Assembly: GCA_047495785.1 (NCBI GenBank) | Contig: JBLDXI010000031.1 | Location: 248,001-312,000, forward strand | Direction of reading: 5' to 3' | DNA from: Lepidodermella squamata | Lineage: Eukaryota; Animalia; Gastrotricha | Length of the DNA: 64,000 nt | Part shown: positions 12,669 to 59,552 of the stretch, in pieces | How positions within the stretch are numbered: position 1 is the stretch's first letter | How the letters are laid out: every line of letters starts with the position of its first letter | Translations under genes and position numbers: made by a program | The notes under the pieces: model-generated | Database searches by the model: none | What the model was told of the DNA's origin: nothing | What the model saw: the letters and a program-made list of their open reading frames with translations, nothing else

Positions 12669-12723
12669 TGTGCAGCATGGTAATGAAATCATGATATTGT
12701 TCATGATTTAACAAGCATACTTA

Positions 12724-15876: not shown

Positions 15877-16234
15877 TGATGTTAGAAAAATTGGAAAGTC
15901 AATGCCTCAATCATGATGGTTACTTGGCAATTTATGTGCAACATGGGGCGTCTGGGCGTGAATAAATTTCAAAGAAATGGGATGTGTGCTGAATATATCA
16001 CCAAATACTCATAAGCATAGGTTATCGAATGAATGTCATCGTTTCACTTCTTGTTTCTTGATTGAGGTTCGCAGCAAAAATATGCTTAAATAGGGAAAAT
16101 GGGGGAAATACCAAAACATGGAAGAACTTTTTTCTATTACGGAATTGAATCAGCTTTACTTTTGGGAATGTAGCAAAACCAGACGTGTCCGAGGTAGAGA
16201 GTTGAGTTCAAAAGTTTAGAAACCTGGCTGTAGT

Positions 16235-16759: not shown

Positions 16760-17143
16760 GCTGTAGTTGTGCACCTTGCGATATACAATGCATCCCAAAG
16801 CAACCTTCAAAAAGATTTTTTATTAGAAATAAGTGATCTGAAACCAAAATCTGCAGTGTTTTGGCTATTTTAGATTCATGTCCACCATTAAGGGTCAAAT
16901 TATCACCTAAAATGCGCATTATGATACCAGTATGACTTGCCAGCTTAGTTACCTCCAATTAAGTGTCAAACGCTCGTAGCCTCGCAACACATTAATCGAT
17001 CAGTCTAGCAAGCCGCACTTCATAATTGAATGGCGGCGCATCGATGGAAACGCACGAGTCATTAAGTATTCAAACACATGCCTCATTGAGGCACACCAAG
17101 CTACACTGCACATTATTGTCACACACTATCTTTCAGCACAAAA

Positions 17144-21112: not shown

Positions 21113-21681
21113 GCTAAATACCTGGTGAAGCGTGACCGGTCACGGCACATGCTTATATAACTCTACATTAGATGTTTGAGAAATTTCACAGCTTTATATG
21201 CCAAATGTCAACTAGCCATCGCCCAGACGAGCTAACGTGTGTAAAATCCTCTTATCTATTACGCGACCGGCTTTTTCACAAGGGTTGTTGTTGTTATGTC
21301 TACCTGTAATTGGGGTCAAAGGCAACACAGGCAACACATATATGCTTGCATGTTTGTTATGCGTAAAGCATTGCATTCGCATGCGGAAGCTCGAAACATC
21401 GAAGAAAGATGTCAATACGTAGAAAATTGATAAAAAAAAGAAAAATAAGATTCTCTGAATTCAAGCAATCTCCCCTAAATCGTGGAAGATCAACCGAACA
21501 GTGCTGACCATCGAAAATTGGTAGATATACAGTATTTAACATGGAATTCTGGATTAATGCATCACTGTTCAAATTTGAGTTGGCTATAGTTAGGGAATGG
21601 GTAACTTTTTCAATAGTTGCGGAATTTATTTATTTTTATAATTTCAACTCGTCTGAAAGCTGAAAGCAACAAAGTTTCCAT

Positions 21682-23288
21682 TTACTCGTAATTTAATTTC
21701 GCCTCAACATGAATAGCGATCATTGGGTTGTCATCTTTCGCTCTGATCGCAAAGTTGGCTTTTCCATCATTTTCAACTGTTACAGCCATTCCAGTACAGC
21801 TTCGTTTATCCGCTGATATGTCCCCAGAAATCACATCACAATATCGACCAGCCGGCAGACTGGTGTACAGAGTGGTATTCAAATTTTTGAAACTTGAAGC
21901 ATTAATGACGTAGAAGGCCTTCTGGCCTCGGGAGAAAGCGATCTGGTTATCGCCGTCGTCCCACCAGTTTTGCATCGCCTCAGAACCAGCGACATTTCGG
22001 AATCTAGCCATGTTGTAGATCTGGCGCCAACGGTGCTCGCAGACCCAGTCATTGCCACAAGAGCCATCAGGATTGATGATGATATTCTTGATGTTGAAGT
22101 TCTCGTCCGATGGAGGTCCAGCCCAATCATTCTTCCATTTGTAGCTGCTCGTAACTCGGGGGATACCATAAGGCCAAGCCAGCATGTAGGAAACACACAT
22201 TTTGTACAATCTGGGTTCCAAAAATGTCGCAACGTTGCCGCCGCCACCATGGCCCCTTTGAATATCGTGGTTGTCAATGAAAACAAAAGCGCTGCCTTCT
22301 GGCATCAAGTAACCAAAGCCTCGGCCGAAGTTTTTCAGACTTTTCAATTGCCTGCCGCCTGAGCCTCGGAAGTACTCGGAAACGTACTTTCCGTAATTGA
22401 ACTCGTCAACACGACCGACGTAGTAATACTCCGCTGACTTGACAGGTTCGCCACCGTAATCGATAACTTCTTGGTAGAGGAATGGTCTAAGACCTGAGGC
22501 AAACCATGGGAACGCTAGGTTATTGACTTTGCTGTGAATAGCCATAATATCGCCAGGCCACATGTGTTTAGCCCCGTCCATATGAAACCCAGCTATGATG
22601 ATAGAAATATTAAATTTATAAGGCAAAATGTGAAATACTTACCAACTCCCGCCTTGACCAATCGGTTGAGCCACTCGACGATTCTGTCTCGAACATTCGC
22701 ACGCCCTTGGTTCAGGTCCAACAGGCCAGAGACTCTGCAATTTCTAACCTGATCAGTTACTCGGTAATCCTCAACATCTCCGCTTTTCGAAGGGCACGGG
22801 TAAGGCGTGGATGTTTTAGAGTTGAAATCTTCCGCTGTGTATGGAACCCCGGGGAAAGACTGGTTGGTTGTATCAAACTCCGAACCTGCTGTCCCAACAC
22901 CTTTCCCAGTGCTGTCCGCAAGCATATGGTTGATAACAATATCAACGTAGATGCGAACTCCAACATTGTTGCATCGATTTACCATGTCATTGAAAGCAGC
23001 TTCATCTCCAGATCTGGAGTAGGTTTTGTAAGAAACAGGCTGGTACCTCTCCCACCATGGCCGTTGATGATATTGGTCCATTATTGTTAAGTATTCGTTA
23101 GGCGGGGACACTTGAACTCCGCAATAGCCTTTCGGTCCCAGGAAACGCTCGCATTCAGCTGCAATGTCATCCCAGCGCCATTCGAATAGGTTAACGATCG
23201 TGGTTCGCCCTTCTGCGCAGTTAGGAATCCATTGTGCAGCAATAGTAGACAAAATGGCTGCAAGACAGACCAGAATACTGTTTTGCAT
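21682..23288 (-). CDS. Alpha-amylase (animal-type GH13), divergent paralog; exons 23288-22643 and 22592-21682 (518 aa)
   Basis: [57 protein letters not shown]; 50-bp phase-1 intron. Confidence 0.92.
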
Positions 23289-23884
23289 TATTATTACTCG
23301 CAGAAAAAGTAACGCTTGTTCCTTGACGTGATTAGACGTTTATATTAAGGTGTAGGAAATGAGTGTAACTTTTATCCAAAAAAGCTCCTTTCGCGGAATA
23401 AAGGGCGTTCTCTTATCTAATTTCTCACGGCAGTTTGCTCGCAAAGCTTCGACAGTTCATGATGCTTCAACCTGGAAAATTTCGGAATAATAGGGCAAGC
23501 ATAGTGCGAAGCATAGAGAATTGCGTAACAGGGACTGCGCTCAATAAACAAACGAGGTGCGAGGTGAAAATTACAATTTTTTTCTATGCCGAACTAATTT
23601 TCTCAATCATTCCTTGGCATGAAAAATCGTTACTTCTCAAGAATTCGACCGCTGAATACCAGAACCACTGATTGTGAAGTAACAGCTCCAATATTTAGTA
23701 TTTCAAATTTCAACCTCTCATTCGTGTTTCGTGTTCGCTACTCAGCCTGTACTGTTCGTGATATTGAGGCCTGCTAAAATATTCCGCTAGGAGTTTACTT
23801 CAAAACCGATCATACTGGGATACACTGTATCCATCACGAATTTTTCAAATCGTTATGTTAAGATTGTTTTAAATTCCGAAGTTT

Positions 23885-25639
<1,755 letters not shown>

Positions 25640-25924
25640 TCATTTTACAGCCACTTCCGAGTGCGAATGTTATTGCTGATAAACCACGCCTATTTTGGCT
25701 GGTTTCCTAATGAGCTTCTATTGCTGCTTCAAAATTTATGCGTGAGATAAGGTCTGGAATTCCGCTGAAGGTCAAAGTGCATGGTGTCGAATGCGACTAC
25801 ATGTCCTATAAATTAGGCCAATTGCTAATCAAGAGCCGGGATAACGAGAATGAAACGAAAGTATATCACATAATAACTTTATTGAACTTTATTCAATTAT
25901 CTTATCAGCTGTTTCAGCAAAATT

Positions 25925-27550
25925 TCACATAGTATCCGAGGAAACTTCAGAGAATTCAGGGTTGTAGCAATCAGGATAGCAAATGGGAGCCGCCATATCC
26001 GGGACTATAGCCAACGCCTTCAAAGACCTATCCGGGAAGGACCTCTCCACGTCAAGGCCCTTCGGTGGTTTGTTGTACATAACCGTGAGATAATCATCCA
26101 CCGGAATCATTTTCCCCAGTGGTTTATCATCAACCAGTTTCTTCGCGCCTTCATACGATAAAATGTAGCCGACAGTCCAGGCTGAGGCACTAGGGTAAAC
26201 GATGTGCCTAGCATATTCGCTGTGGACGTAATCTTCAGGAATTTCGACATCATGCCGTCCACGACCGACGTAGATCAAATGCCAATCTTTCGCATATTGC
26301 CCAGCCTCGACTAGAGCTTCCAGCATGATTCGGACGAAATTAGGCCTAGGGGCGATGTCATCCTCCATGATGAAGACCTTTTCGTACCTTTTCTCCACAA
26401 CTTCCTGCCAAATGTTGTAATGGCTCAGGAAACAAGCGATTTCTCCAATTGTTAAATTTTTCCCTGAATTCCGATTGATATAACCCTCCAGCTGCCGAAC
26501 TCCCATGTTCGTGAGATCTTCTAACGTCAATTTGGAACCATCGACAGAATCGAAACGCCTGAATTCCAGTCCAAAAAGTTCGAAAAGCTTGTTCATCACT
26601 AATAGTCGATCGGGCCGCTTCGCAAGATTGACCATGTAAATTTCATCAAAGCCAAGTTTAGTCCTGGAAATCTCAAAGCCATGAAAAGCATTTGGCAAAA
26701 CTTCGAGTTGTTTTCGGTAAAAAGCGTGTTTAAAAACGTGTCTCGAAGTTAAGGACATAAGCCAGGTTTCTTGATAGCTCATATCCTCATTTGCTGGTCC
26801 AGTTGCATAGCCGAAAAAGTCATCGTTAACAATATATTTCTGTCCCATAATCTCACCGCCTGATAGAATGCTGTCGATAAAATTTATTTTGCTGATTTGT
26901 AACAAAAGTGCCGTGGATTGCTTCGAGAGATTCCGAACTTGAAAGATGCCCTGAATGTGACGGAGTCTTGCCAATCCAGTTTCCTCTTTCGAATTAAGCT
27001 CAAAATTCGTGTAGAAATTGCTCGAATTCAACATTGGTGACGTAATAGGCAAATTCAGCTCGATAAGCCGTGAAAGAGTGGCATTGTTGACCAATGTAAC
27101 ATCTTCGTCCAGCCGGAATAGATAATCAGCTTCGACTTCGTTTTCCAACAGGTATTTCAAAGCTTGTCGCTCGATGCCGTTGTTCAAAACAAAGTTGCCA
27201 TGTGATTGAATTTTCACCGATCGATATTTCCCGCGATTTGCCTCGAACCAAAATTTAAAAATTTCTGATTCAGACCCGGCTGATAGGCAGAGAAATAGAA
27301 TGATTCTAGACTTTGGGTAGTTGAGCCTCTCTAGGGCGCCGAGGAAATATGGCAAGCTAGCTGTTCGGTCGTTAGAAAGTGATGTAGCAATGCATACGAC
27401 TGGGTGAAAAGACTTTTGCAGAATTAGCCTCTCGAGCTGGCTGTTATCGTACGAATCAAGATTGCGATCGGCTGCCAATAAAATGATTAGTGAAAGCAAC
27501 GCCAGCAAGTTGATGGTTGCCGCTAATATTTGATAACGACGACTGATCAT
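25925..27550 (-). CDS. GT25-family glycosyltransferase, COLGALT-like paralog, intronless
   Basis: N-terminal hydrophobic anchor; LPYFLGALERLNYPK; ADYLFRLDEDV; KLGFDEIYMVNLAKRPDR; GEIACFLSHY; MEDD; IPVDDYL. Confidence 0.85.
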   Translation of the reverse strand: MISRRYQILAATINLLALLSLIILLAADRNLDSYDNSQLERLILQKSFHPVVCIATSLSNDRTASLPYFLGALERLNYPKSRIILFLCLSAGSESEIFKFWFEANRGKYRSVKIQSHGNFVLNNGIERQALKYLLENEVEADYLFRLDEDVTLVNNATLSRLIELNLPITSPMLNSSNFYTNFELNSKEETGLARLRHIQGIFQVRNLSKQSTALLLQISKINFIDSILSGGEIMGQKYIVNDDFFGYATGPANEDMSYQETWLMSLTSRHVFKHAFYRKQLEVLPNAFHGFEISRTKLGFDEIYMVNLAKRPDRLLVMNKLFELFGLEFRRFDSVDGSKLTLEDLTNMGVRQLEGYINRNSGKNLTIGEIACFLSHYNIWQEVVEKRYEKVFIMEDDIAPRPNFVRIMLEALVEAGQYAKDWHLIYVGRGRHDVEIPEDYVHSEYARHIVYPSASAWTVGYILSYEGAKKLVDDKPLGKMIPVDDYLTVMYNKPPKGLDVERSFPDRSLKALAIVPDMAAPICYPDCYNPEFSEVSSDTM

Positions 27551-32590: not shown

Positions 32591-33142
32591 ATGTACAATC
32601 TCATGTCCGAGTCACACAAAGCATCCCACGATGCTTTGTGTGACAAGGTTGGAACCATATCGTCGAAAATTGCCCGGTGTCAGCCAGGCTGGGTAAAAAT
32701 GCAGGACCACCAGAGGAACTGAATAAACTGAGAATCTGCGCCAAATGCGGCGAAAAGGCCACCACAACAAAGAGCGCTGTGTTGATACATTTCGTTGCGC
32801 AAATTGCGGTAGCTTTTGCTAGGCGACTATTCAGGTGAAATACACTTGAAATATGGTTTATCGCATATGTACAATCTCATGTCCGAGTCACACAAAGCAT
32901 CCCACGATGCTTTGTGTGACAAGGTTGGAACCATATCGTCGAAAATTGCCCGGTGTCAGCCAGGCTGGGTAAAAATGCAGGACCACCAGAGGAACTGAAT
33001 AAACTGAGAATCTGCGCCAAATGCGGCGAAAAGGCCACCACAACAAAGAGCGCTGTGTTGATACATTTCGTTGCGCAAATTGCGGTAGCTTTTGCTAGGC
33101 GACTATTCAGGTGAAATACACTTGAAATATGGTTTATCGCAT
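32591..33142. repeat. Direct tandem duplication, 2 x 276 bp
   Basis: 32591-32866 and 32867-33142 read identical (ATGTACAATCTC...GTTTATCGCAT). Confidence 0.9.
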
Positions 33143-34040
33143 AGAGAATAGAGTTACCAGAGATGAAACTCCTATTGGAAACTTGAAGTTTTAATTCTTT
33201 TGCCGATTTCGTAAATTTTCATTATGGCGGATCTTTTTTAAACTCACGCATGCATGTTTACATGTAAAAAAGGGTGTTTTTCAACGCGCTATACCCACTA
33301 TCCCCCATCATAGAATTTTTATTTTTTTATTTTAATCGAAGGGGATCGGTTTCAACTTCAACCAGTTCAAAGGAATCGGCTGGGAAATGAATGGTTTTGA
33401 CGCCATAGCGGTTTTCCCGAAGGTCACTTTTTGTGGGTTCAAAAATAGGTGTTTTCGGCTTGGCCCCACGGCCACATCCTTGATCGGACCATCGTTTTCT
33501 TTGGTGGAAATGATAGACTTGAGTCCATATTATCACCATGTGAAATGAGTTGTTTACCAAAGCCGCCGTTCAAAAATTATTCATGGGTTTCAGAAGCATT
33601 TTTTCGGAATTCTGTTATTGAATATATGGCAAAGTGCAGAGGCTGAAATCGATGCTAAGTTTTTTTTCAAATTTTTTGAAAGCAACCTACGAAATTTCTC
33701 AATTTTTTTTAATACGAAGCGCGAACGCGTTTTCACATGCGGAATGACGTCTGGAATGACGGCTGGGTGGTTTAGGTATAAGCATGTAAACCAAAAAAAT
33801 GCTTCTGAAACCCATGAATAATTTTTGAACGGCGGCTTTGGTAAACAACTCATTTCACATGGTGATAATATGGACTCAAGTCTATCATTTCCACCAAAGA
33901 AAACGATGGTCCGATCAAGGATGTGGCCGTGGGGCCAAGCCGAAAACACCTATTTTTGAACCCACAAAAAGTAAAAAAATAAAAAAATAAAAATTCTATG
34001 ATGGGGGATAGTGGGTATAGCGGTAACTCTATTCTCTATG
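33140..34040. mobile_element. P-element/hAT-like foldback MITE
   Basis: 19-bp TIR CATAGAGAATAGAGTTACC; 8-bp TSD GTTTATCG; internal inverted arms of about 179 bp (33426-33604 and 33794-33972). Confidence 0.85.
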
Positions 34041-41626: not shown

Positions 41627-43458
41627 ACTTTCGGTCCAGCACTCGGGCAGGATAAGGCTGGATGAGTGCTGGATGGTGCTGGATGAGTGCTGGACAGTGC
41701 TGGATGAGTGCTGGACAGTGCTGGATAGCATCCAGCACAAGTGGTGCTGGGTGTTACTATAAATAGAAATTTAATCCAGCACCACCATCCAGCACATCCG
41801 GCACAGGCTGATTGCTGATCAAAAAACTGTCCAGCACCGACAACATAGTCATCCGGCACCGCGAAAACCATACCCACGCACTATCCAGCAGATGTTCCGG
41901 TTGGTGCTGGATAGATGCAGCGGGATGTTTCATTCAGCCGAAATCGCGATTTCAAGACCCGATTTCGACCCGATCGGCGGCGAATTAGGACAGCGGCCCG
42001 TGACAGTTTGTTTAGAATTTCACGGGCTATCTAATGATATAAAATTTACTGAACGGCGATGCTGGGTTCGGTCTGAAATTGCGATCAAAGTCGGCCGATT
42101 TGGCGTGCGGCCAAGGCCAAAATCGCGATTTCAAGACCCGATTTCGACCCGATCGGCGGCGAATTAGGACAGCGGCCGTTGATAGTTTGTTTAGAATTTC
42201 AAGGGCTATCTAATGATATAAAATTTACCGAACGGCGATGCTGGGTTCGGTCTGAAATTGCGATCAAAGTCGGCCGATTTGGCGTGCGGCCAAGGCCAAA
42301 ATCGCGATTTCAAGACCCGATTTCGACCCGATCGGCGGCGAATTAGGACAGCGGCCGTTGATAGTTTGTTTAGAATTTCAAGGGCTATCTAATGATATAA
42401 AATTTACCGAACGGCGATGCTGGGTTCGGTCTGAAATTGCGATCAAAGTCGGCCGATTTGGCGTGCGGCCAAGGCCATAATTGCGATTTCAAGACCCGAT
42501 TTCGACCCGATCGGCGGCGAATTAGGACAGCGGCCCGTGACAGTTTGTTTAGAATTTCACGGGCTATCTAATGATATAAAATTTACTGAACGGCGATGCT
42601 GGGTTCGGTCTGAAATTGCGATCAAAGTCGGCCGATTTGGCATGCGGCCAAGGCCATAATTGCGATTTCAAGACCCGATTTCGACCCGATCGGCGGCGAA
42701 TTAGGACAGCGGCCCGTGACAGTTTGTTTAGAATTTCACGGGCTATCTAATGATATAAAATTTACTGAACGGCGATGCTGGGTTCGGTCTGAAATTGCGA
42801 TCAAAGTCGGCCGATTTGGCGTGCGGCCAAGGCCATAATTGCGATTTCAAGACCCGATTTCGACCCGATCGGCGGCGAATTAGGACAGCGGCCGTTGATA
42901 GTTTGTTTAGAATTTCAAGGGCTATCTAATGATATAAAATTTACCGAACGGCGATGCTGGGTTCGGTCTGAAATTGCGATCAAAGTCGGCCGATTTGGCG
43001 TCGAGTCATAATCAGACATTATGGCGGCTTAGTGCTGCCAAAAACGCCATGTTGAGCTTTATTTACTGACTCATAAACGTTGTAATTACGCATTTGTTAT
43101 AGATCAAATAGAGAAGCGAGTGTGGCGTAGTTGCGTAGTAGCTCCTCAAAACTTCCACTCGAGTTCCACTCAAAACTTCCACTGAAGATCTCGAGTTCGG
43201 TTCCACGCGTCGCCGTTTTTTTTCACGCAAAATCATCCGATTCAGTGCTGGACAGATGGTGGACGGGTGCTGGATGGCGGCGGGGATGAGGCAGGATGAA
43301 GGGCTGGCTATCCAGCACCGTCCAGCACTCATCATGGGATATCGGGCCGCCGAGTATTTTCATGGCTTCACGCCAATCCAGCACCGTCCGGCACTGTGCT
43401 GGATGGGTGCTGGACAGGTGCTGGACAAAATGGTGCTGGATGGTGCTGGAGCAAAAGT
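41627..43458. mobile_element. Non-autonomous relative of the tyrosine-recombinase element, carrying a 179-bp satellite
   Basis: Ends TA-ACTTTCGGTCCAGCAC and GTGCTGGAGCAAAAGT-TA; CCAGCAC/GTGCTGG subterminal arrays; same terminal layout as 46809-59550. Confidence 0.75.
41942..43001. repeat. Tandem satellite, 179-bp unit, about 5.9 copies
   Basis: Unit starts at 41942, 42121, 42300, 42479, 42658 and 42837 (AATCGCGATTTCAAGACCCG...). Confidence 0.95.
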
Positions 43459-45254: not shown

Positions 45255-45471
45255 ATGTCGCACCCGTCACCAGCATGTTGCTTTCCCGCATCACTGCGGG
45301 ATATACGCTGCGGGTCTGTCCCGCACCCCGCAGCAGTTTATCCCTTACTCATCCCGCACTCTTATCACAGTCATCCTGCACCGCCTTGGCACTTGTCCCG
45401 CACTAGTCCCGCACTAGTCCCGAACTCATACCGCATCGACCCGCACTTGTGCGGGGAGATGGACGATATTT
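45255..45471. mobile_element. Solo right-end fragment of a CCCGCA-family element
   Basis: CCCGCA repeats; terminal hairpin CCGCACTTGTGCGG; GTGCGGG-N10-ATATTT exactly as at 59535-59557. Confidence 0.6.
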
Positions 45472-46440: not shown

Positions 46441-47409
46441 TCCCCGGTAGGTTGGCTGCTAGAGCTTAGTTCTATCGCAAAATGAGTGTAGCCAAGGCTA
46501 TTTTCAGCCTTACTTACAGCAAAATATCTTAGCTTTGCTCGCTTCGCTCGCTATAATCATAGGGAGTGCTAATTTGAAATTTGCCCTCGACTTTCAGCGA
46601 AGAACAGAAGCATTAATTTGAGGTGAAAACTTAATTCGTAACCAACTTGGATAAATATATTTTATTTAACACAAGGTGATAAGTTTCAAGTCCTTTATAG
46701 GTGAATTAAGGTCAATTTTGTTTTTTTTTATTTTTGAAATGTTACGAGATTTTGAGCATTTTCAGGCCATTCTCGCTGCAAAACCTCTAAAAATTGCTCG
46801 CCAGTTTAACTTTGCATCCCGCACCAAGTGCGGGAAGCTGCGGGACGCGTTGTGTTGGTCTCATCCCGCAGCATCCCGCAGTTGCTCCCGCAGTCCATCC
46901 CGCCTGTCCCGCAGTTCATCCCGCAGTTCATCCCGCTTGTCCCGCTGCCCGACCCGCAGCCCATCCCGCACGTCCCGCAGTCCATCCCGCACCAAAATAT
47001 TCTGGCCGGCGGCATCCCGCAGTTTCATCCCGCACGTCCCGCAGCCCATCCCGCACTCTATCCCGCATTTCCCACTGGTTATCCGCACCTAAAAATTCCA
47101 AATATTGCAGGTGCCGGTTGAAGATTTCAGATTAAGTCATATCAACAAAACTTTTTAAAGGAAGATCGTTTTATTCATCACTTGTTGTTATTTTCTAGCT
47201 TTCTCACAGATTATTGCCTTTGATTGTATTGAGGAGTACCGAATTAAATGAAATTCATCAAAAAATCACCAGCGCTAATAAAGAAATGTCAGAGATATGC
47301 TTGCAATCCGCTAGGCTGCTTTAGATTCCAATTCCCTTATTGCCATTTTCGAACATTCTGATCTAGTATAAAAAACTCGTCAAATTGCAAACCAATAAGA
47401 ACGAAAGGC

Positions 47410-47850
47410 TTACAGTTTTTCGTCCAGCGTTGATGGCAAGTTTAAATTCGACTTTTTAACTGGGTCATTGAGATCTCCTTCGTCCTCGACCTCCGACCTC
47501 GGACGCTTCGCCGTCTGCCGGTTTTCGGCGTGATCAGAGTCGGAAGAGCTCAATTGGCTTTCATTCGAGTGACGATTAGTAAACCGATAAGAACCATTGC
47601 GATTAGCCACAACGAGAAGAACAGGCGGTCCATCTGAATTGAAGAGGCGGTTTATTTCAGCCAAATTCATCACGTCATTGTCACTGTCGATGAGTATTCT
47701 ATTGTTCCCGAATTGGTAGAAAATTCTGGATACGACGGCTTGGCCTATTTTGGCGATACTTCTTCGTAAAGAGCTGAAATTTAGGTCAGTCTTAACATCA
47801 ACAAAGCGACATACGTCAGGTTCGAATGAAAACTTGGATAAAAATAGCAT
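47410..47850 (-). CDS. PB1/ubiquitin-fold-like ORF inside the YR element
   Basis: 146 aa; FSSLRRSI...RIFYQFGNNRILIDSDNDV parallels FAQLKSSL...QIFHQFSSLSILISNDNDV of the 58975 exon; acidic/basic tail. Confidence 0.5.
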   Translation of the reverse strand: MLFLSKFSFEPDVCRFVDVKTDLNFSSLRRSIAKIGQAVVSRIFYQFGNNRILIDSDNDVMNLAEINRLFNSDGPPVLLVVANRNGSYRFTNRHSNESQLSSSDSDHAENRQTAKRPRSEVEDEGDLNDPVKKSNLNLPSTLDEKL

Positions 47851-48298
47851 ATTAAATCCCTAAACAAAAAGACATATGAATAGATGCTGCAATAAACCCA
47901 TATCGCAATCGAGCGATTCTTTCACTTCTGCCACTGCGAGTTGAATATTTCCCCTAGTATTTGCGCCGAGGGCGACAATATTTCTCCGAATCCGGTTTTC
48001 TGAAATTAAATGGTCAGAAATGCCGAATCCAGCACCGAAATGACTTACTTAGCAAGCAGTTCTCTGGCCATGGGGCTCAAATTCGGACAGCTTTGTTTGT
48101 CTAGCTTCGCAATTAAAACACGCGGAGTTACTCTAAAAAATCATAATAGATTATATAGAAAAATCAGCTGAATTTTTTACTTTTTTCTCCTTCTTCGGCG
48201 AACTCTTTTTCGGTGTTGCAAAGCTTGTCGAGGTGCTCGGCTGACTGCGAAAAATCCAACAGTTATACTCACAATAATATGCCAAATATCATTTATAC

Positions 48299-51200
48299 CT
48301 GTCGGCTGGAATGTTCAAACTTCGAATCTTATCAAAAAACATGAGTGCACCGTTGTGGTTCATCAGCTCATAATGTGCCATAGCAGTAGACGGCCTAAAA
48401 CGGCAATATATCCGAATTATGTGAACAAATTTAACAACTAGCAAAATTACTTGTGCCCAGCACCCTTCGCGAAATTCGCATCCCCGAAACCATTAGTGTT
48501 GGCGTATTGGGAATGCGCGGACTTGCGGACGAGCGTGAAGCCAAATTTTTTCGGCGGAAGAGATGCTTCCTCACGCCAGCGGTCCCACCGCTTTTCCAAA
48601 ATGCGGTCGAGGTCAGAACTGTCCAATGGCTCCCCATCGATACTTAGTAAAAAGTAATTCGGCGGCTTGGGCTCCGTCGTCAGAAAATAATCTTTATTTT
48701 TCGCGAACAGCGACGGCCGCCAGTGTATCAAATACTTATCACAAATCCTCCATGTCTCTTCGTGGAAAATAACGAATCCCGCATTAGTAGTTTCTGCCTT
48801 GCACGCTACAAATAAACGAAAAATTATAACATATTAAATGGGATATAAAAAGACGAACCAAAAATGCGGACGAGGTAGACCAGCCGCCCCTCTTTCGTCG
48901 TTCGAGGTATCGCGGCCTCAAATTCTTCCACGGTCATTCGCCAGAAGCTGCTGGGTCGAATGATCGTTGTTTCGATCAGCGAGCTCGATACACACGAGGT
49001 GAAAATCAGCAGCGATTCACGGGTCGGACGACGCGAAAAATCGCCGAGTTGCATTGCCTCGTAGCGAGAAAACTCGGAGATCTCTCCGATACTCGGGAAA
49101 AGCCCCTTCTCGTACGAGTCTTCGTCGAGTTTTCGCTTGACGGCTCGCTCCTTGACTAGGCCATACTGAAGGGCTTCGCGAGCCTTATCCCACCGATCGA
49201 TCGCCTTGTCGACAAGCAGCTTCTCTTCAACAGAAGCTTCTTCGTTGACATACAGGGTGTTTCAGAACTCGCGCACTATACGAATCGCATGCGGCAAATG
49301 CGCGCGCATTGTTATGCATTGTTATGCGCCTATAGAGTTATACGCGTATACTACTTTACCTATAAAAGTACTACGCACTACTGTAATAAGCATATAAAAT
49401 ATGCGTAAAACACAAATGTACAGCATACATAATAGCACTGCCGAGCTATTTTCTGGCGGGAACGTTCGAGCCTCGATAAATTTGAACTGAGTTTCATTAA
49501 ATATCTTTTTTATTTCGAGGATGATGTCATGGTTTTCTGAAACATGCTGATTGATTGGACTCTGAAGCAAGAGGTTTCGAAACAATTTCTCAATTTCCGT
49601 GGCTAGATATTTCAGAAACTGATGATTTCTGAGAAAATTCTGATTTTACTTGATTTTAAATTCGTCGAAAAATTGATGATTGATTAGTTTCCTGCCTTTG
49701 CATCATTATTATTTTCACGTTGCGTGAATACTAGACTCCGACTGCACAAGTTTAGAAAAAATGACGTAGTTTGAACCACTGGCTTGAGTTCTACATCGAG
49801 TAAAGAACGAAAATCAAGATTTCCAGTTCATTACGTCGAATAAACGCAGCGATTCCATTTCGTGGATAACTAATCAAAATTGTCACAAAATAACAACCAA
49901 GAACATTAGGAGAAAATGATGTACGGTAAAGACCAAAATACTCATGGCTAGAATTTTCATGATCTCCCGAAAACCCAAGAAAAAGTAAAAAATTGATGTT
50001 TTCCAGACTTTAAGCTACTGCATCTCCGAAAGACCGAGGGTGACAATTGCATTTTTTCATATCACAAGGAAGCCAAAGATGTCCTCTACATGGCTGTTTG
50101 GTCGCGCTGAAATTCTATCCACAGGGTTCGCAAGGAATCGCATGTCAAATGTCACGAAAATCGTCGTAGTTGGGCCGTTTTCGGCCGCAAACGGGTCATC
50201 TTTGCGACCCTCCAGTTCGAGAACCCGTGGATGAATTTTTGATTTCTTGACATCGTTAGATAGCTGAAGACCTGGTCTACAAGGCTGGCGGGTCGCGCCA
50301 AAAGTCTATCCACATGGTTCGCAAGGAATCGCATGTCAAATGTCACAAAAATCGTCGTAGTTGGGCCGTTTTGAGCCGCAAACGGGTCATCCTTACCTCC
50401 CTCCAGTTCGAGAACCCGTGGATGAATTTTTGATTTCTTGACATCGTTAGATAGCTGAAGACCTGGTCTACAAGGCTGGCGGGTCGCGCCAAAAGTCTAT
50501 CCACATGGTTCGCAAGGAATCGCATGTCAAATGTCACAAAAATCGTCGTAGTTGGGCCGTTTTGAGCCGCAAACGGGTCATCCTTACCTCCCTCCCGTTC
50601 GAGAACCCGTGGATGAATTTTTGATTTCTTGACATCGTTAGATAGCTGAAGAGCAGGTCTACAAGGCTGGCGGGTCGCGCCGAAAATCTATCCACAGGAT
50701 TCGCAAGGAATCGCATGTCAAATGTCACGAAAATCGTCGTAGTTGGGCCGTTTTCGGCCGCAAACGGGTCATCTTTGCGACCCTCCCATTCAAGAACCCG
50801 TGGATGGAATTTCGATTTCTTGGTATCGCTAGATAGCTAAGCACCCGGTCTACAAGGCTGGTTGGTCGCGCCAAAAGTCTATCCACATGGTTCGCAAGGA
50901 ATCGCATGTCAAATGTCACGAAAATCGTCGTAGTTGGGCCGTTTTCGGCCGCAAACGGGTCATCTTTGCGACCCTCCCATTCAAGAACCCGTGGATGGAA
51001 TTTCGATTTCTTGGTATCGCTAGATAGCTAAGCACCCGGTCTACAAGGCTGGTTGGTCGCGCCAAAAGTCTATCCACATGGTTCGCAAGGAATCGCATGT
51101 CAAATGTCACAAAAATCGTCGTAGTTGGGCCGTTTTGAGCCGCAAACGGGTCATCTTTGCGACCCTCCCATTCAAGAACCCGTGGATGGAATTTCGATTT

Positions 51201-54200
51201 CTTGGTATCGCTAGATAGCTAAGCACCCGGTCTACAAGGCTGGTTGGTCGCGCCAAAAGTCTATCCACATGGTTCGCAAGGAATCGCATGTCAAATGTCA
51301 CGAAAATCGTCGTAGTTGGGCCGTTTTCGGCCGCAAACGGGTCATCTTTGCGACCCTCCCATTCAAGAACCCGTGGATGGAATTTCGATTTCTTGGTATC
51401 GCTAGATAGCTAAGCACCCGGTCTACAAGGCTGGTTGGTCGCGCCAAAAGTCTATCCACATGGTTCGCAAGGAATCGCATGTCAAATGTCACAAAAATCG
51501 TCGTAGTTGGGCCGTTTTGAGCCGCAAACGGGTCATCCTTACCTCCCTCCCGTTCGAGAACCCGCGGATGAATTTTTGATTTCTTGACATCGTTAGATAG
51601 CTGAAGAGCAGGTCTACAAGGCTGGCGGGTCGCGCCGAAAATCTATCCACAGGATTCGCAAGGAATCGCATGTCAAATGTCACAAAAATCGTCGTAGTTG
51701 GGCCGTTTTGAGCCGCAAACGGGTCATCCTTACCTCCCTCCCGTTCGAGAACCCGTGGATGAATTTTTGATTTCTTGACATCGTTAGATAGCTGAAGAGC
51801 AGGTCTACAAGGCTGGCGGGTCGCGCCGAAAATCTATCCACATGGTTCGCAAGGAATCGCATGTCAAATGTCACAAAAATCGTCGTAGTTGGGCCGTTTT
51901 GAGCCGCAAACGGGTCATCCTTACCTCCCTCCAGTTCGAGAACCCGTGGATGAATTTTTGATTTCTTGACATCGTTAGATAGCTGAAGACCTGGTCTACA
52001 AGGCTGGCGGGTCGCGCCAAAAGTCTATCCACATGGTTCGCAAGGAATCGCATGTCAAATGTCACAAAAATCGTCGTAGTTGGGCCGTTTTGAGCCGCAA
52101 ACGGGTCATCCTTACCTCCCTCCCGTTCGAGAACCCGTGGATGAATTTTTGATTTCTTGACATCGTTAGATAGCTGAAGAGCAGGTCTACAAGGCTGGCG
52201 GGTCGCGCCGAAAATCTATCCACAGGATTCGCAAGGAATCGCATGTCAAATGTCACGAAAATCGTCGTAGTTGGGCCGTTTTCGGCCGCAAACGGGTCAT
52301 CTTTGCGACCCTCCCATTCAAGAACCCGTGGATGGAATTTCGATTTCTTGGTATCGCTAGATAGCTAAGCACCCGGTCTACAAGGCTGGTTGGTCGCGCC
52401 AAAAGTCTATCCACATGGTTCGCAAGGAATCGCATGTCAAATGTCACAAAAATCGTCGTAGTTGGGCCGTTTTGAGCCGCAAACGGGTCATCCTTACCTC
52501 CCTCCAGTTCGAGAACCCGTGGATGAATTTTTGATTTCTTGACATCGTTAGATAGCTGAAGACCTGGTCTACAAGGCTGGCGGGTCGCGCCAAAAGTCTA
52601 TCCACATGGTTCGCAAGGAATCGCATGTCAAATGTCACAAAAATCGTCGTAGTTGGGCCGTTTTGAGCCGCAAACGGGTCATCCTTACCTCCCTCCAGTT
52701 CGAGAACCCGTGGATGAATTTTTGATTTCTTGGTATCGCTAGATAGCTAAGCACCCGGTCTACAAGGCTGGTTGGTCGCGCCAAAAGTCTATCCACATGG
52801 TTCGCAAGGAATCGCATGTCAAATGTCACAAAAATCGTCGTAGTTGGGCCGTTTTGAGCCGCAAACGGGTCATCCTTACCTCCCTCCCGTTCGAGAACCC
52901 GCGGATGAATTTTTGATTTCTTGACATCGTTAGATAGCTGAAGAGCAGGTCTACAAGGCTGGCGGGTCGCGCCGAAAATCTATCCACAGGATTCGCAAGG
53001 AATCGCATGTCAAATGTCACAAAAATCGTCGTAGTTGGGCCGTTTTGAGCCGCAAACGGGTCATCCTTACCTCCCTCCCGTTCGAGAACCCGTGGATGAA
53101 TTTTTGATTTCTTGACATCGTTAGATAGCTGAAGAGCAGGTCTACAAGGCTGGCGGGTCGCGCCGAAAATCTATCCACATGGTTCGCAAGGAATCGCATG
53201 TCAAATGTCACAAAAATCGTCGTAGTTGGGCCGTTTTGAGCCGCAAACGGGTCATCCTTACCTCCCTCCAGTTCGAGAACCCGTGGATGAATTTTTGATT
53301 TCTTGACATCGTTAGATAGCTGAAGACCTGGTCTACAAGGCTGGCGGGTCGCGCCAAAAGTCTATCCACATGGTTCGCAAGGAATCGCATGTCAAATGTC
53401 ACAAAAATCGTCGTAGTTGGGCCGTTTTGAGCCGCAAACGGGTCATCCTTACCTCCCTCCAGTTCGAGAACCCGTGGATGAATTTTTGATTTCTTGACAT
53501 CGTTAGATAGCTGAAGACCTGGTCTACAAGGCTGGCGGGTCGCGCCAAAAGTCTATCCACATGGTTCGCAAGGAATCGCATGTCAAATGTCACAAAAATC
53601 GTCGTAGTTGGGCCGTTTTGAGCCGCAAACGGGTCATCCTTACCTCCCTCCCGTTCGAGAACCCGTGGATGAATTTTTGATTTCTTGACATCGTTAGATA
53701 GCTGAAGAGCAGGTCTACAAGGCTGGCGGGTCGCGCCGAAAATCTATCCACAGGATTCGCAAGGAATCGCATGTCAAATGTCACGAAAATCGTCGTAGTT
53801 GGGCCGTTTTCGGCCGCAAACGGGTCATCCTTACCTCCCTCCAGTTCGAGAACCCGTGGATGAATTTTTGATTTCTTGGTATCGCTAGATAGCTAAGCAC
53901 CCGGTCTACAAGGCTGGTTGGTCGCGCCAAAAGTCTATCCACATGGTTCGCAAGGAATCGCATGTCAAATGTCACAAAAATCGTCGTAGTTGGGCCGTTT
54001 TGAGCCGCAAACGGGTCATCCTTACCTCCCTCCAGTTCGAGAACCCGTGGATGAATTTTTGATTTCTTGACATCGTTAGATAGCTGAAGACCTGGTCTAC
54101 AAGGCTGGCGGGTCGCGCCAAAAGTCTATCCACATGGTTCGCAAGGAATCGCATGTCAAATGTCACAAAAATCGTCGTAGTTGGGCCGTTTTGAGCCGCA

Positions 54201-57200
54201 AACGGGTCATCCTTACCTCCCTCCAGTTCGAGAACCCGTGGATGAATTTTTGATTTCTTGACATCGTTAGATAGCTGAAGAGCAGGTCTACAAGGCTGGC
54301 GGGTCGCGCCGAAAATCTATCCACATGGTTCGCAAGGAATCGCATGTCAAATGTCACAAAAATCGTCGTAGTTGGGCCGTTTTGAGCCGCAAACGGGTCA
54401 TCCTTACCTCCCTCCAGTTCGAGAACCCGTGGATGAATTTTTGATTTCTTGACATCGTTAGATAGCTGAAGACCTGGTCTACAAGGCTGGCGGGTCGCGC
54501 CAAAAGTCTATCCACATGGTTCGCAAGGAATCGCATGTCAAATGTCACAAAAATCGTCGTAGTTGGGCCGTTTTGAGCCGCAAACGGGTCATCCTTACCT
54601 CCCTCCAGTTCGAGAACCCGTGGATGAATTTTTGATTTCTTGACATCGTTAGATAGCTGAAGACCTGGTCTACAAGGCTGGCGGGTCGCGCCAAAAGTCT
54701 ATCCACATGGTTCGCAAGGAATCGCATGTCAAATGTCACAAAAATCGTCGTAGTTGGGCCGTTTTGAGCCGCAAACGGGTCATCTTTGCGACCCTCCCAT
54801 TCAAGAACCCGTGGATGGAATTTCGATTTCTTGACATCGTTAGATAGCTGAAGAGCAGGTCTACAAGGCTGGCGGGTCGCGCCGAAAATCTATCCACAGG
54901 ATTCGCAAGGAATCGCATGTCAAATGTCACGAAAATCGTCGTAGTTGGGCCGTTTTCGGCCGCAAACGGGTCATCTTTGCGACCCTCCCATTCAAGAACC
55001 CGTGGATGGAATTTCGATTTCTTGGTATCGCTAGATAGCTAAGCACCCGGTCTACAAGGCTGGTTGGTCGCGCCAAAAGTCTATCCACATGGTTCGCAAG
55101 GAATCGCATGTCAAATGTCACAAAAATCGTCGTAGTTGGGCCGTTTTGAGCCGCAAACGGGTCATCCTTACCTCCCTCCAGTTCGAGAACCCGTGGATGA
55201 ATTTTTGATTTCTTGACATCGTTAGATAGCTGAAGACCTGGTCTACAAGGCTGGCGGGTCGCGCCAAAAGTCTATCCACATGGTTCGCAAGGAATCGCAT
55301 GTCAAATGTCACAAAAATCGTCGTAGTTGGGCCGTTTTGAGCCGCAAACGGGTCATCCTTACCTCCCTCCAGTTCGAGAACCCGTGGATGAATTTTTGAT
55401 TTCTTGGTATCGCTAGATAGCTAAGCACCCGGTCTACAAGGCTGGTTGGTCGCGCCAAAAGTCTATCCACATGGTTCGCAAGGAATCGCATGTCAAATGT
55501 CACAAAAATCGTCGTAGTTGGGCCGTTTTGAGCCGCAAACGGGTCATCCTTACCTCCCTCCCGTTCGAGAACCCGCGGATGAATTTTTGATTTCTTGACA
55601 TCGTTAGATAGCTGAAGAGCAGGTCTACAAGGCTGGCGGGTCGCGCCGAAAATCTATCCACAGGATTCGCAAGGAATCGCATGTCAAATGTCACAAAAAT
55701 CGTCGTAGTTGGGCCGTTTTGAGCCGCAAACGGGTCATCCTTACCTCCCTCCCGTTCGAGATCCCGCGGAAGGATTTTCGATTTCTTGATATCGTTAGAA
55801 AGCCCAAGAGCTGTTCTACCTGGCTGGTTGGTCGCGCAAAAAGTCTACCCACGGGTTTTGCATGGAATCGCATATCAAATGTCGCAAAATTCGTCGTGGA
55901 GAGGCTGTTTAAGGTAACGTCAATGTTTTTTCGTTTATTCTTATGCAAAAGGTAAACGACGTTTTCCTGTGGAAGCGACCAAGTTTTTGCTCACAAATTT
56001 AGCTCACAGAAATTTTTAAACTCAATCAGAGTGTTGCAACATTTTACCTTTTTCAGTTCTTCTCAATTTTTACTGCTTTTTCAAGAGTGAATGAACGTGA
56101 AATCAAATTCATGGAATGAAACAACAGCAACAACGTAAAAATCACATCATCTGGAATAAATTTTATTATATTTGTATTTAAAACTCGAAATGTATTCATA
56201 GCCGCATTAAGGATCTGTCCTATTGGAGAATTCTTCATTGGGAAATCGGCAAATTTCCAGATATTTTGCAAGAGCAAGTCTTATTTCTTAGCGGTATCCC
56301 CATTACTGCAGCAGCGTTACGGTATATACGCGTTCGATTTGCGCATTTTATAATGCGCGCATACCGCTTGTACGCCGTTTCGGCGTATAACGCCAACTAC
56401 ATAGCATGTGCGCATTACACGCATAACCGTTTGCGCTAGCCGCGCTTTATAATATGCTGTGCAAGAATATAAACATATGTGCGCGGAATGTATGCACAGC
56501 GCGCGCACGTTTACTCTGGATACCAAGGCAACCATTTGCCGCAGGTTATTCTGATGCGCAAGTTCTGAAACACCCTGTAATACCCAAGCAGATCGATGAT
56601 GGCCTGCACATACTTGTATTTGCTGCCATCCTGTACTTTGAATGCAACGATCACATCAAGAATTCGATCCATTTCTTCTTTGTCGATCAGTTGATCGACA
56701 GAGTTTAACTTCGCCGAAGTCGTTAGTCGTTCCAAGATAGATTTCTTCGCCTTTTTTGTAACTTCCTTGTGAGCGAAATTCTTCCCACTAAATCGAGAAG
56801 ATTCGGAAAATCGAACGTATCTTTTGATCAGCAGTGCCAGATGATTAACAGTAATCGAGGCGATGGATGTTGTCGAGGTAGTAGCCGATGACACGGAAAC
56901 AACAGATACCACTGACGTCGAAATCGTCGAGGCATCGCTCATGATCGACTCAGTATCAGATCGTGTATCAGATCGCCCCGAAGTCTACATCAAAATGAAA
57001 AATAGATTAAAAAAGCAGATTCCACAAAAAATACCTTCAAATTTGCGTAATAAACATCTACTGATCTTTTCAACTCCTCGTTGCTTTTGCCCTGCTCCTT
57101 CGCCTTGGTACAATGTCTCTCGACATGTCGGCGAAATTCTCCGCTTTCGTAGTCATTACGACAAAACATACATATATGCCTCTGCCTCTCGCGTGATCTG

Positions 57201-57700
57201 CCGTTCCCAGCAAAACGGCCCAGCTCATCGCGAGTTCTTTGATTACCAGTCAACGCCGGTAGTTTAACAAGTTTTTCGACGTAATTTCCCGAATCACTGA
57301 ACTGGTTTTGCCATGAATCAAGCAAAAAATCCACTGTCTCCGAAACAGCATTCACAGCAGAGCATGGTCCAGTCAACTCAATGCCGCGCTTGCCAATTGA
57401 AACAGTAACATTCTTCGGCTCGCAGAGCTTCTCCACTTCCGCCTTTAATTCGTCTGTTACGACATAGCGGTATTCGATCACAGCCTTCTTAATGGAAGCT
57501 GCTGCGCGTTCCATAACGACGAGTCGGACTTGCGCCATCTCCTTGGCCTTCGCAAGCCGCACAGGTTCACCAGATAAGACAAGCGTGTTACCAGCAATAT
57601 CAACGCCATCTAGCTGAAATCGCTCAGCGATGTCTCGGAAGCCAGCGCAATTCACCTGATTGGCAATTGAATCAGGAATGTTAATTAAAGCCTTAGGCAT
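48299..57700 (-). CDS. Spliced tyrosine recombinase (KH-like x2, C2HC finger, Ser/Thr linker, core-binding domain, catalytic domain), disrupted by a MITE; exons 57700-57035, 56984-56578 joined to 49250-48859, 48805-48451, 48394-48299; a short 3' tail to about 47954 is uncertain
   Basis: IIRPSSFWRMTVEEF (R 48956-58), ACKAET (K 48798-800), YLIHWRP, FLLSIDGEPL, TLVRKS (R 48525-27), AKGAGHKPSTAMAHY (H 48453-55, Y 48370-72); introns of 50, 53 and 56 bp all phase-compatible. Confidence 0.8.
49253..56577. mobile_element. Tc1/mariner-type non-autonomous element carrying a 191-bp satellite array
   Basis: TIR CAGGGTGTTTCAGAACT.GCGCA; TA duplication at 49251-49252 and 56578-56579; excision restores LLGYY-VNEEAS. 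Confidence 0.92.
50040..55900. repeat. Tandem satellite, 191-bp unit, about 30 copies, several mosaic variants, decayed edge units
   Basis: Exact 191-bp period (repeated ORF starts 50346 to 55694); anchor GCAAGGAATCGCATGTCAAATGTCAC. Confidence 0.98.
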
Positions 57701-57866
57701 TCTATGGGAAAAAAGATAGCGTTCAATTGAAGATTTTCTGACAGCTATGAAAACTGTATTGATGAACGATGAAAAAATGTTAACAAGCTTCGTCGGGCTT
57801 TTAGCAATCGAAGATCTGAATTTTCTTCAGCCGCAATGCGGGAGGAAAATTGAATGCGAAAAAAAG

Positions 57867-58975
57867 TCACGCATTGCCACTAGATCCTAGTTTGATAATT
57901 TTGTCCAATAAATTTCTTTCTTCACGAGAGCCAAATGTAGAGTTGTAGTCTATATTCAGATCTTTGATTGCTGTTGAAATGGAAGTAACAGTTGGCGGCA
58001 GGCCTTTGTTTACTATGTGCCACGAAATGATTCGAAGAGTTGAAAGCTCGTTCTCTGTGTATTCAGAACCCTTTTTAGGTCCTCTGCGAGATGACGCCAT
58101 TTTTGCTGAAACAAAAAGTCTGCGAAGAGTAATCAAGAAAATCACTCCAACTCAGGCTAACATACTTAAATGGATCACTCCCGGTAGCCGAGGGTTCATT
58201 TAGATAAGCTTGGGTGATTGGTGCGTGACCGTGATTAGGAAACAAGGCAGGAAAATTCCGTTGGGATGCGGGCACCGATGGGACAACACATGAATTATCC
58301 ACAGCCAATGATGCCCCGCAGCATTGTTTTGAGTGATGATGGATATCGCGATTGAAGGCAACGGGCGAAGAAGGTGCAACAACTGCACGATTGGATGATC
58401 GATGAGCTTTGCTAATATTGAAATAATCCTTAGAATGCAAGAACCAGAGAACTTCAAATGATTATTACAGTATAGGGCGAGACGACTCTATGTAACGCGG
58501 TCTTTCCGGCAATAGACGATTCGGCTCGGCAATATCACTGACACAAGGAGAGCAAAAATCATCGAATTTAAAATGAGTAGCCCACGGCAAACCTGTCTGA
58601 AGATTCTTCCTCTCTTTCCACCGCATCGTCATCAAAGTCTACCAGTAAATCGCGGCGGCGTCTCTTTTTGTTAGAGCGAGGATCAGATGCGTGTTTTCTT
58701 TTCAAAGAATCTGCCGTGGAGCATACAAGTTCAATAATGCAAGGGCTTGGAGCGCCGGAACGTTGCATAGCGAACATAGTCTTGACATCATTGTCATTTG
58801 AGATCAGGATACTCAGGCTACTGAACTGGTGAAAAATCTGAAATGAATTAGCGAGACCAAAAGCTGCGGACAAGCTTGATTTCAGCTGAGCGAATGTAAT
58901 ATCCTCGTGATCAGGCAACCGGAAGTATCGATGGCCTGCATTGCCGGGCATCTTAACAACAATGCTTCGATCCAT
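57867..58975 (-). CDS. Upstream spliced ORF of the YR element: PB1-like, basic/acidic linker, Myb/SANT-like; exons 58975-58593, 58537-58469, 58411-58166, 58119-57871 (or stop at 57867)
   Basis: Three phase-2 GT-AG introns (55, 57, 46 bp) link four ORFs without stops; KRKH...KKRRRR NLS-like stretch; YTENELSTL...REERNLLDKIIKL. A phase-2 intron 57870-57702 would fuse it in frame to the recombinase. Confidence 0.6.
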
Positions 58976-59552
58976 CAAAATGTTAAACTGGAGTAGTGGG
59001 TAGTAGTTAACAATAGGATGGGGTGATTCGTGATTTAGTTGAAAACTATTTTACACCTTACATCTGAATCAGGCAAGTTTTAGGTTTCAGCGGGAACCTC
59101 TCTGAAAAACATGGAACTCGCGCTTGTTCGCCGCCTTTCCCATACATAGAAATCGAGCAAAAAAAATTAAAATCCATACAATTTTTTTTAGAAATGTAAT
59201 GAAAATTATTTCGGAATTTAATAAAATCTAGCCTCATTTGCGACAAGGTCAAGCCGCGTGATTATTGAATTTATTATCAGAGGTTCGGGTGCGCTGATTC
59301 ATGAGTTTAAGCTAGACGGCTTGACGGGTCGGCTAAACGAGTATACATACGGAGTAGTCAAGACTTCATCCCGCAGGTCATCCCGCAGGCCATCCCGCAG
59401 ACCATCCCGCACTTCGGCGGAAAGCTGCTGGACACTTGCGGGATGAAGTGCGGGACGTCCCGCAGCATGTGCAGGATACATCCCGCAGCATGTGCGGGAT
59501 ACATCCCGCAGTTCATCCCGCACGTCCCGCACTGGTGCGGGATGCAAAGTTA

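Follow-up and report, generated by a model that had tools for sequence, protein, structure and literature searches.

Extra KH-fold, zinc finger and PB1-like modules in a putative tyrosine recombinase DNA transposon of the gastrotrich Lepidodermella squamata

Cryptons, as described for CryptonA/F/S/I (Kojima and Jurka 2011, PMC3212892) and in Glomhopper 2026 (PMC13465315), lack terminal inverted repeats (TIRs), display direct repeats of 4-6 bp and, in animals, encode a tyrosine recombinase (YR)/DUF3504 protein only (PMC3212892, PMC13465315). A stretch of 64,000 nucleotides from the gastrotrich Lepidodermella squamata (positions 248,001 to 312,000 of contig JBLDXI010000031.1, assembly GCA_047495785.1; termed the window hereafter, with all coordinates counted within it) contains a locus that can be compared with them. 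Positions 56985-58975 of the window seem to constitute the 5' coding part of a putative DNA transposon moved by a YR, and we assign a probability of roughly 0.6 to this best explanation of the locus taken as a whole. The candidate element resembles Cryptons in being a eukaryotic DNA element with a YR as its sole catalytic protein and without a reverse transcriptase. It differs from them in its perfect 18-bp TIRs with subterminal arrays of a 9-bp motif, in the KH-KH-finger N-terminus of its recombinase and its additional PB1-like open reading frames (ORFs), and in the absence of a DUF3504 match from every member of the window family. The element is Crypton-like in the broad sense, whereas its terminal structure and its sequence family are not those of Cryptons.

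Other YRs and YR-mobilised elements resemble the window element in part. The top fold matches of the recombinase family include lambda Int and Tn1549 Int, and in the heterobivalent YRs of the lambda Int, Tn916 and Tn1549 types an extra N-terminal DNA-binding part reads 'arm' sites set back from the crossover, to which the arrays lying under the TIRs of the window element may be similar. However, these YRs are prokaryotic, use another arm-binding fold, contain no KH, PB1 or C2HC parts and show a sequence identity of only 11-15%. Starship 'Captain' elements of fungi are also YR-mobilised DNA transposons, some of them with TIRs, but they are giant cargo carriers whose recombinase belongs to DUF3435, a family without a match in the window family. 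The YR retrotransposons DIRS, Ngaro and VIPER likewise encode a recombinase of this type in eukaryotes, and the termini of DIRS are inverted; they also possess a reverse transcriptase, RNase H and split direct repeats, none of which is present inside the window element. A full-text literature search for transposon papers joining a tyrosine recombinase with a KH or PB1 domain found none, and a YR transposon with these inverted repeats, arrays and extra domains is undescribed.

The candidate element occupies positions 46809-59550 on the minus strand (Table 1) and comprises about 5.4 kb without a nested insertion of 7.3 kb. Its 18-bp TIR is found at 2 sites only in the window, as opposed to 0.04 expected, and each end of the element is flanked by TA only. 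Under each TIR lies an array of the motif TGCGGGATG, accompanied by CATCCCGCA at the 5' end. When sites with at most one mismatch are counted, the last 5' site falls inside the 5' TIR, and the window as a whole holds 53 TGCGGGATG sites versus 12.6 expected. Tandem Repeats Finder detects periods of 12, 21 and 33 in the 3' array. Between the inverted repeats and outside the nested insertion there is no reverse transcriptase ORF. The nested element, with ends CAGGGTGTTTCAGAAC..., is Tc1/mariner-like as judged by these ends, and its interior consists almost entirely of a 191-bp satellite (30.4 copies, 50085-55897). It cuts off the recombinase core (49250-48289) from the coding stretch at 56984-56578, and the recombinase reading frame is unbroken across both of its TA-flanked edges. 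Because the insertion interrupts the recombinase gene (ORF2), this copy of the element is inactive; all exons outside the insertion are intact.

Two arrays of TGCTGGATG, one base off TGCGGGATG, are located at 41646-41914 and 43242-43455 around a 179-bp satellite (41937-43001); arrays and satellite may represent a non-autonomous relative of the same transposon family. The arrays GTGCTGGAA and GTGCTGAA of the related locus L004 resemble these TGCTGGATG arrays. Also, five TGCGGGATG-like sites form a short cluster of their own at 45295-45435, beside a LINE reverse transcriptase fragment, and could be a solitary or broken element end.

Five stop-to-stop open stretches follow each other on the minus strand (59050-58571, 58151-57870, 57826-56993, 56984-56514 and 49261-48292) and contain, respectively, a PB1-like domain, a 'Myb-like' part, KH-like repeats with a finger, a Ser/Thr-rich and then helical region, and the recombinase core, the last being situated about 7 kb beyond the fourth. 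For the recombinase, an AlphaFold2 model (14-row alignment, mean pLDDT 74) was obtained with the related protein P0018, which is 40-49% identical to the YR exons of the window. In Foldseek comparisons this model matches XerA, lambda Int, Tn1549 Int, Cre and XerH (E 1.3e-5 to 1e-3, probability 1.0), and XerA is also the top PDB match of the family sequence profile (E 9.7e-4). The model supports a predicted two-domain YR fold consisting of a helical core-binding domain and a catalytic domain, and the profile supports a sequence relationship to known YRs. By alignment and by eye, the family retains the candidate catalytic residues R (IIRPSS), K (CKA), R (LVRK), H (GAGH) and Y (AHYEL), and the last exon, which carries the candidate catalytic Tyr, is conserved in P0018, L001, L003 and L006 (E ~1e-7) as well as in L004. 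Past the recombinase stop, several GT..AG intervals, each about 50 nt long, follow one another at positions 48298-48047; if the donor ACAG/GTATAA over the last codons were used, this region could contribute small extra exons coding for a basic Ser/Pro/Lys tail and a C-x2-C piece.

Relatives of the locus were sought with the 236-aa ORF at 57700-56990 (minus strand), which encodes LVLSGEPVRLAKAKE, IELTGPCSAVNAVSE and CMFC..FRRHVERHC. Among 1.84 billion representative proteins there were six matches, five of them true relatives (E 1.8e-12 to 8e-4), all being unnamed ORFs on ENA metagenome contigs; P0005, a repeat protein of 1429 aa, is a spurious low-complexity match. A word search with the 236-aa ORF gave no match, a profile word search retrieved 4 proteins only, and a search with alignment A8 through viral contigs, prokaryotic genomes and JGI metagenomes retrieved no relatives. 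For the Myb-like, KH and YR pieces, searches of Pfam and PDB with single exons yielded nothing informative. Public data contain very few members of the family, about 10 protein clusters, all on unannotated metagenome contigs. In P0001, P0012, P0016 and P0018, a single ORF joins the KH-like region to the finger, a Ser-rich linker and the YR, and it is colinear with the window exons at 21-42% identity. Since the relatives hold all these parts in one uninterrupted ORF, the recombinase polypeptide includes the KH repeats and the finger, which the original prediction, made from the letters of the window alone, had already fused to it. The extra modules are real and are kept in the same order across distant relatives.

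The element-like layout is also seen at L004, which has inverted repeats at about 511-545 and 5201-5226, subterminal GTGCTG arrays and the order PB1, PB1, module, finger, recombinase. There, a short Cys-rich N-terminus (2514-2651; C-x2-C-x-C ... C-x2-C-x-H ... H), for which Pfam gives no match, takes the place of the KH pair, which suggests that the recombinase can exchange its N-terminal module. In L002 and L005 there are smaller arrays, made up of other heptamers. Together with those of L004, they indicate that the layout is conserved and that the repeated motif differs between lineages.

An AlphaFold2 model of the 236-aa ORF (9-row alignment) reaches a pLDDT of about 90 over residues 1-130, which form two beta-(alpha)alpha-beta-beta-alpha units. 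The top 18 Foldseek matches are tandem-KH Pno1/Dim2 or Krr1 structures, including those in pre-ribosomes and archaeal Dim2p 2e3u, 3aev and 1tua, followed by IMP3 KH1-2, IMP2 KH3-4, FMRP KH1-2 and KSRP KH2-3. These matches start at E 2.6e-4 with probability 1.0 and cover both repeats in about 155-160 aligned columns, so that the tandem KH di-domains of Pno1/Dim2, Krr1, IMP1-3, FMRP and KSRP are the best structural matches. Signals in the sequence are weak, i.e., Pfam matches of relatives to PARP14-KH6 (E 5.6e-4) and vigilin KH (E 0.022), and a single-repeat profile finds only non-significant uL6 and KH matches in PDB (E 0.1-1). At the level of the predicted fold, the model supports a KH type I beta-alpha-alpha-beta-beta-alpha topology for both repeats and bears out the tandem KH-like assignment that had been made by eye.

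The proposed C2HC finger following the KH repeats holds as well. Its pattern (Table 1), with the ligands C-x2-C-x11-H-x4-C, is invariant in nine sequences, the invariant columns being H175, C177, F179, C180, S186, R190, H192 and C197, and the ligands C177, C180, H192 and C197. The ligand set is C2HC, because P0016 loses the penultimate His and keeps the Cys. The finger is modelled by AlphaFold2 as a beta hairpin and a helix (pLDDT 80-89), is weakly matched by zf-Di19 in 7 of the 9 members (best E 9.9e-5) and has the CCHC finger of the CCHFV Gn tail as its best PDB match (E 0.016).

Upstream of the recombinase gene, the PB1-like ORF at 58978-58568 (minus strand; IVVK..RYFRL..ITFAQLK..ILISNDNDV) provides exon 1 of ORF1 with the domain PB1a. 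Pfam PB1 is the top family in all five members scanned (best E 3e-5), each scoring under the curated threshold, and the PB1-like profile has the PB1 domains of Cdc24 (E 0.08) and MEKK3 as best PDB matches. The best sequence matches are to PB1 domains (Cdc24/Bem1, MEKK3, p62, Par6), with S-D-x-D-V aligning to their acidic OPCA-like segment. PB1a matches the locus of a relative with E 4e-11, and it is 34% identical (E 1e-7) to PB1b, encoded by the second PB1-like ORF of the element (ORF3). L002 has one PB1-like copy and L004 two. In the acidic segment only S-(D/N)-x-D-(V/L) is kept, D64 being invariant, and the first-strand Lys is present in three of four full members. The layout of a basic and then an acidic stretch after PB1 recurs in L004 and in PB1b, and the basic motif of ORF1 resembles a nuclear localisation signal. 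The PB1-like assignment of the original prediction is thus supported by sequence, albeit under threshold. PB1b lies inside the element and follows the recombinase stop on the strand of the recombinase gene; the two PB1-like ORFs of L004 are both upstream. On L005, positions 2-460 (minus strand) give a weak PB1-like HMM match (E 0.005) on the opposite strand, upstream of array and recombinase gene and at the contig edge.

The second part of ORF1 derives from the 'Myb-like' ORF at 58145-57867 (minus strand; YTENELSTL..REERNLLDK). This module is conserved in four lineages (window, L002, L004 and L007/L008; alignment A13). With leave-one-out HMMs, the third member was the top non-self match among 2304 six-frame ORFs (E 1.8e-6, 6.2e-7 and 7e-3), and the three-sequence HMM picks up the fourth lineage, L007/L008, with E 2e-7. 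No Myb/SANT family of Pfam was matched at E up to 10 by the four members scanned (window, L002, L004 and L007), and the PDB profile matches of the module are to the winged-helix region of Nse1 only (E 0.035); the other weak signal is LexA_DNA_bind (E 0.09). Y9 and F51, 42 residues apart, are the only invariant aromatic residues; Trp is unique to the window copy and a conserved aromatic triad is missing. The module is genuine and conserved but, as far as its sequence tells, not demonstrably Myb/SANT, and this label of the original prediction is not supported.

PB1-like domain and module most likely share ORF1, since L004 contains an intron (CG/GTTTGT..TCATAG/A) at the same position and in the same phase as candidate intron 1 of the window and L007, without an intron there, encodes an N-terminal domain and the module in one uninterrupted ORF of 181 aa. 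In L007, this N-terminal domain, undetected by Pfam and by the PB1 HMM, stands in place of PB1. Intron 1 of the window may hide a further linker exon. The relation of ORF1 to ORF2 has two possible readings. All peptides and ORFs cited in the original prediction are found on the minus strand where it had placed them, and the gap at 57870-57702 indeed corresponds to a phase-compatible GT..AG interval of 169 nt. On this basis, all exons might be spliced into one long recombinase, with PB1-like domain and module at the N-terminus of the KH-finger-YR polypeptide, an arrangement for which a good pyrimidine tract also speaks, as does the acceptor, which in the window, L002 and L005 is separated from the ATG by 1 nt. 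Counted from the coordinates, such a fusion would comprise about 850 aa and not the >950 aa claimed originally, and the relatives do not favour it. In L007 and L008, ORF1 stops after the module, the KH-finger-recombinase ORF has its ATG 33-40 nt further on, and the one GT..AG pair there leads to an in-frame TAA. The module ORF of L002 and L004 is also closed by a stop, and no GT donor spares the conserved last helix. Splicing of ORF1 to ORF2 was considered for L002, L004 and L008, and by eye no productive donor-acceptor pair was found. In addition, the Met at the start of KH1, before which the stops of the relatives lie, is conserved in all eight members with KH repeats and follows a pyrimidine tract and AG within 0-10 nt in 6 of 7 loci. 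We consider the single fusion protein unlikely.

Two proteins are favoured because the stops of the relatives lack usable donors and the KH1 Met is conserved, and the locus most likely encodes two main proteins, as far as can be read from the sequence. According to the coordinates, ORF1 (about 211 aa; exons 58975-58593 and 58119-57870) would consist of the PB1-like domain, a basic and acidic linker and the module of about 60 aa, and ORF2 (about 641 aa from the ATG at 57700) of two KH-fold repeats, the C2HC finger, a Ser/Thr-rich linker and the two-domain YR. A pyrimidine tract and AG 0-12 nt upstream of the ATG are seen at three window ORFs (58987-58979, 57710-57701 and 47868-47860) and before the ORF2 ATG also in L001-L003, L005 and L006. 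Such tracts would be consistent with introns in the 5' UTRs or with an operon-like transcript that undergoes spliced-leader trans-splicing.

By analogy with the heterobivalent YRs, the arrays are probably accessory binding sites. The YR core would act at the tips of the inverted repeats, and the finger, possibly together with the ORF1 module, might bind the TGCGGGATG arrays under each TIR as accessory 'arm-type' sites, the invariant finger being the best candidate for an array reader and the ORF1 module the second. The non-canonical KH pair might serve as a protein scaffold or single-strand binder. Since PB1 domains typically pair front to back, the ORF1 and ORF3 proteins could form a bridge between the two ends or control assembly; PB1-PB1 contacts among them would help to join the two element ends. 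The broadest version of this proposal, i.e., a previously undescribed superfamily of eukaryotic YR DNA transposons with TIRs, lineage-specific arrays, 2-3 cistrons, a KH-KH-finger YR that reads accessory sites like lambda Int and separate PB1 proteins that polymerise to hold the ends, is tentative, and we would not expect all of it to hold.

Alternatively, the ORF1 and ORF3 proteins might be regulators or host-interaction factors, acting for instance as an inhibitor, as an import adaptor or in tethering to chromatin, and the DNA work might be left to the recombinase and its finger. The separation of ORF1 from the recombinase is in line with this idea, as are the basic motif similar to a nuclear localisation signal, the module signals, which hint only to winged helices of the Nse1 and LexA types (E 0.035-0.09), and the P0001 subfamily, in whose upstream ORFs, so far as its short contigs show them, PB1 and module are not detectable. 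ORF1 is nevertheless kept beside ORF2 in four divergent lineages and there is no positive evidence for such a role, which makes this a distinctly unlikely account. An origin of the upstream modules as fragments captured from host genes, or as functionless chance ORFs, is highly improbable, for apart from the lack of Pfam matches above threshold nothing speaks for it, relatives of only 21-42% identity have these modules in an unchanged order, the exons outside the nested insertion are intact, and the cross-matches by HMM and BLAST are significant.

Several observations weigh against the reading that we prefer, that of a transposon with a multi-module YR and separate PB1-like proteins. The Foldseek matches reach TM-scores of 0.2-0.6 only, low values that result from multi-domain models and shallow alignments (9-14 rows). 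The second catalytic His (H-x-x-R) is replaced by Thr or Asn in all family members, and scans of the family members with the Pfam recombinase families, DUF3504, Phage_integrase and DUF3435 among them, gave no match at E up to 1; the family thus appears to be a very divergent YR lineage. The KH-fold repeats differ from the known tandem KH di-domains in sequence (9-16% identity) and in the GXXG loop, which is absent from all 16 aligned repeats (alignment A9), so that canonical nucleic-acid binding by the KH pair is doubtful; the first KH-like domain of Pno1 and Krr1 is likewise said to be devoid of GXXG. PB1a scores 19.4 bits with Pfam PB1 (PF00564), under the gathering threshold of 23.6 bits, and in contrast to established PB1 domains most of the acidic OPCA residues are lost. 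The donor GC/GTGACT over the ORF1 stop permits an in-frame fusion, in the window only, and the layout is read from DNA alone. The P0001 subfamily has a different upstream ORF without detectable PB1 or module, as far as is visible on its short contigs. Finally, mobility and target duplication are putative, as read from this one copy.

Table 1. Features of the candidate element in the window, listed from its 5' end to its 3' end; a slash within a sequence marks a splice junction.
Feature	Position	Strand	Remarks
5'-end terminal inverted repeat ACTTTGCATCCCGCACCA	59533..59550	-	perfect 18/18 inverted match to 46809-46826
5' subterminal array, TGCGGGATG and CATCCCGCA motifs	59367..59532	.	13 sites at 59367-59544
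ORF1 exon 1, PB1-like domain (PB1a)	58703..58975	-	ATG at 58975; Pfam PB1 E 0.001
ORF1 exon 1 linker, basic (KKRRRR) then acidic	58593..58702	-	ends at donor ACAG/GTTTGC
Candidate intron 1	58120..58592	-	473 nt, GT..AG, phase 2
ORF1 exon 2 module, ~60 aa	57888..58067	-	exon 58119-57870, stop TGA 57869-57867; S-x-Y-x3-E ... F-G-x-R
ORF1-ORF2 gap or 169-nt intron	57702..57870	-	donor GC/GTGACT overlaps ORF1 stop; acceptor ..CCCATAG/A ATG
ORF2 KH-fold repeat 1 (predicted)	57497..57700	-	begins at family-conserved Met; AlphaFold2 and Foldseek
ORF2 KH-fold repeat 2 (predicted)	57296..57496	-	AlphaFold2 and Foldseek; no GXXG loop
ORF2 C2HC beta-beta-alpha zinc finger	57095..57187	-	H-x-C-x-F-C-x5-S-x3-R-x-H-x4-C
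Intron 3	56985..57034	-	50 nt, AAG/GTATTT..TGTAG/ACT, phase 0; relatives read through in one ORF
ORF2 exon 2a, Ser/Thr-rich linker and start of recombinase N-terminal (core-binding) domain	56578..56984	-	colinear with P0001/P0018, 29-33% identity
Nested inverted-repeat element CAGGGTG...CACCCTG	49253..56577	.	TA on both flanks; splits ORF2
ORF2 exon 2b, recombinase, candidate first catalytic Arg (IIRPSS)	48859..49250	-	fold and profile matches
Intron 4	48858-48806	-	between ORF2 exons 2b and 3
ORF2 exon 3, catalytic domain (CKA Lys, FTLVRK Arg, GAGH His)	48451..48805	-	
Intron 5	48450-48395	-	before ORF2 last exon
ORF2 last exon (RPSTAMAHYEL), candidate catalytic Tyr AHYEL	48289..48394	-	Tyr codon 48372-48370; stop TGA 48291-48289
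ORF3, second PB1-like ORF (PB1b), PB1 then basic and acidic tail	47410..47850	-	Pfam PB1 E 0.021
3' subterminal TGCGGGATG array	46827..47067	.	16 sites at 46815-47067
3'-end terminal inverted repeat	46809..46826	+	partner of 59533-59550

The window has the look of a eukaryotic genome of invertebrate type, with tandem gene pairs, LINE and gypsy fragments, satellites and introns that measure about 50 nt. At 1865-7166, 8904-18541 and 19535-27550 the host genes come in pairs, tandem or segmental. These are two receptor-like ORFs (869 and 828 aa), two pairs of lectin-like genes, two glycosyltransferase-like ORFs (525 and 541 aa) and two genes of amylase-like type. A 276-bp tandem repeat is present in two copies of 100% identity at 32591-33143. 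The element might interrupt a LINE reverse transcriptase, a fragment of which forms its 5' flank and breaks off at the element boundary, but the 3' flank shows no clear continuation of it.

To our knowledge, eukaryotic YR DNA transposons (Cryptons) are poorly understood and none has been studied biochemically. With its clear ends, repeated candidate sites and separable modules, the element from L. squamata would provide a tractable system for how YRs find and pair their ends. Because KH and PB1 domains are unreported on transposases in the literature searched, it would also widen the domain repertoire of transposases.

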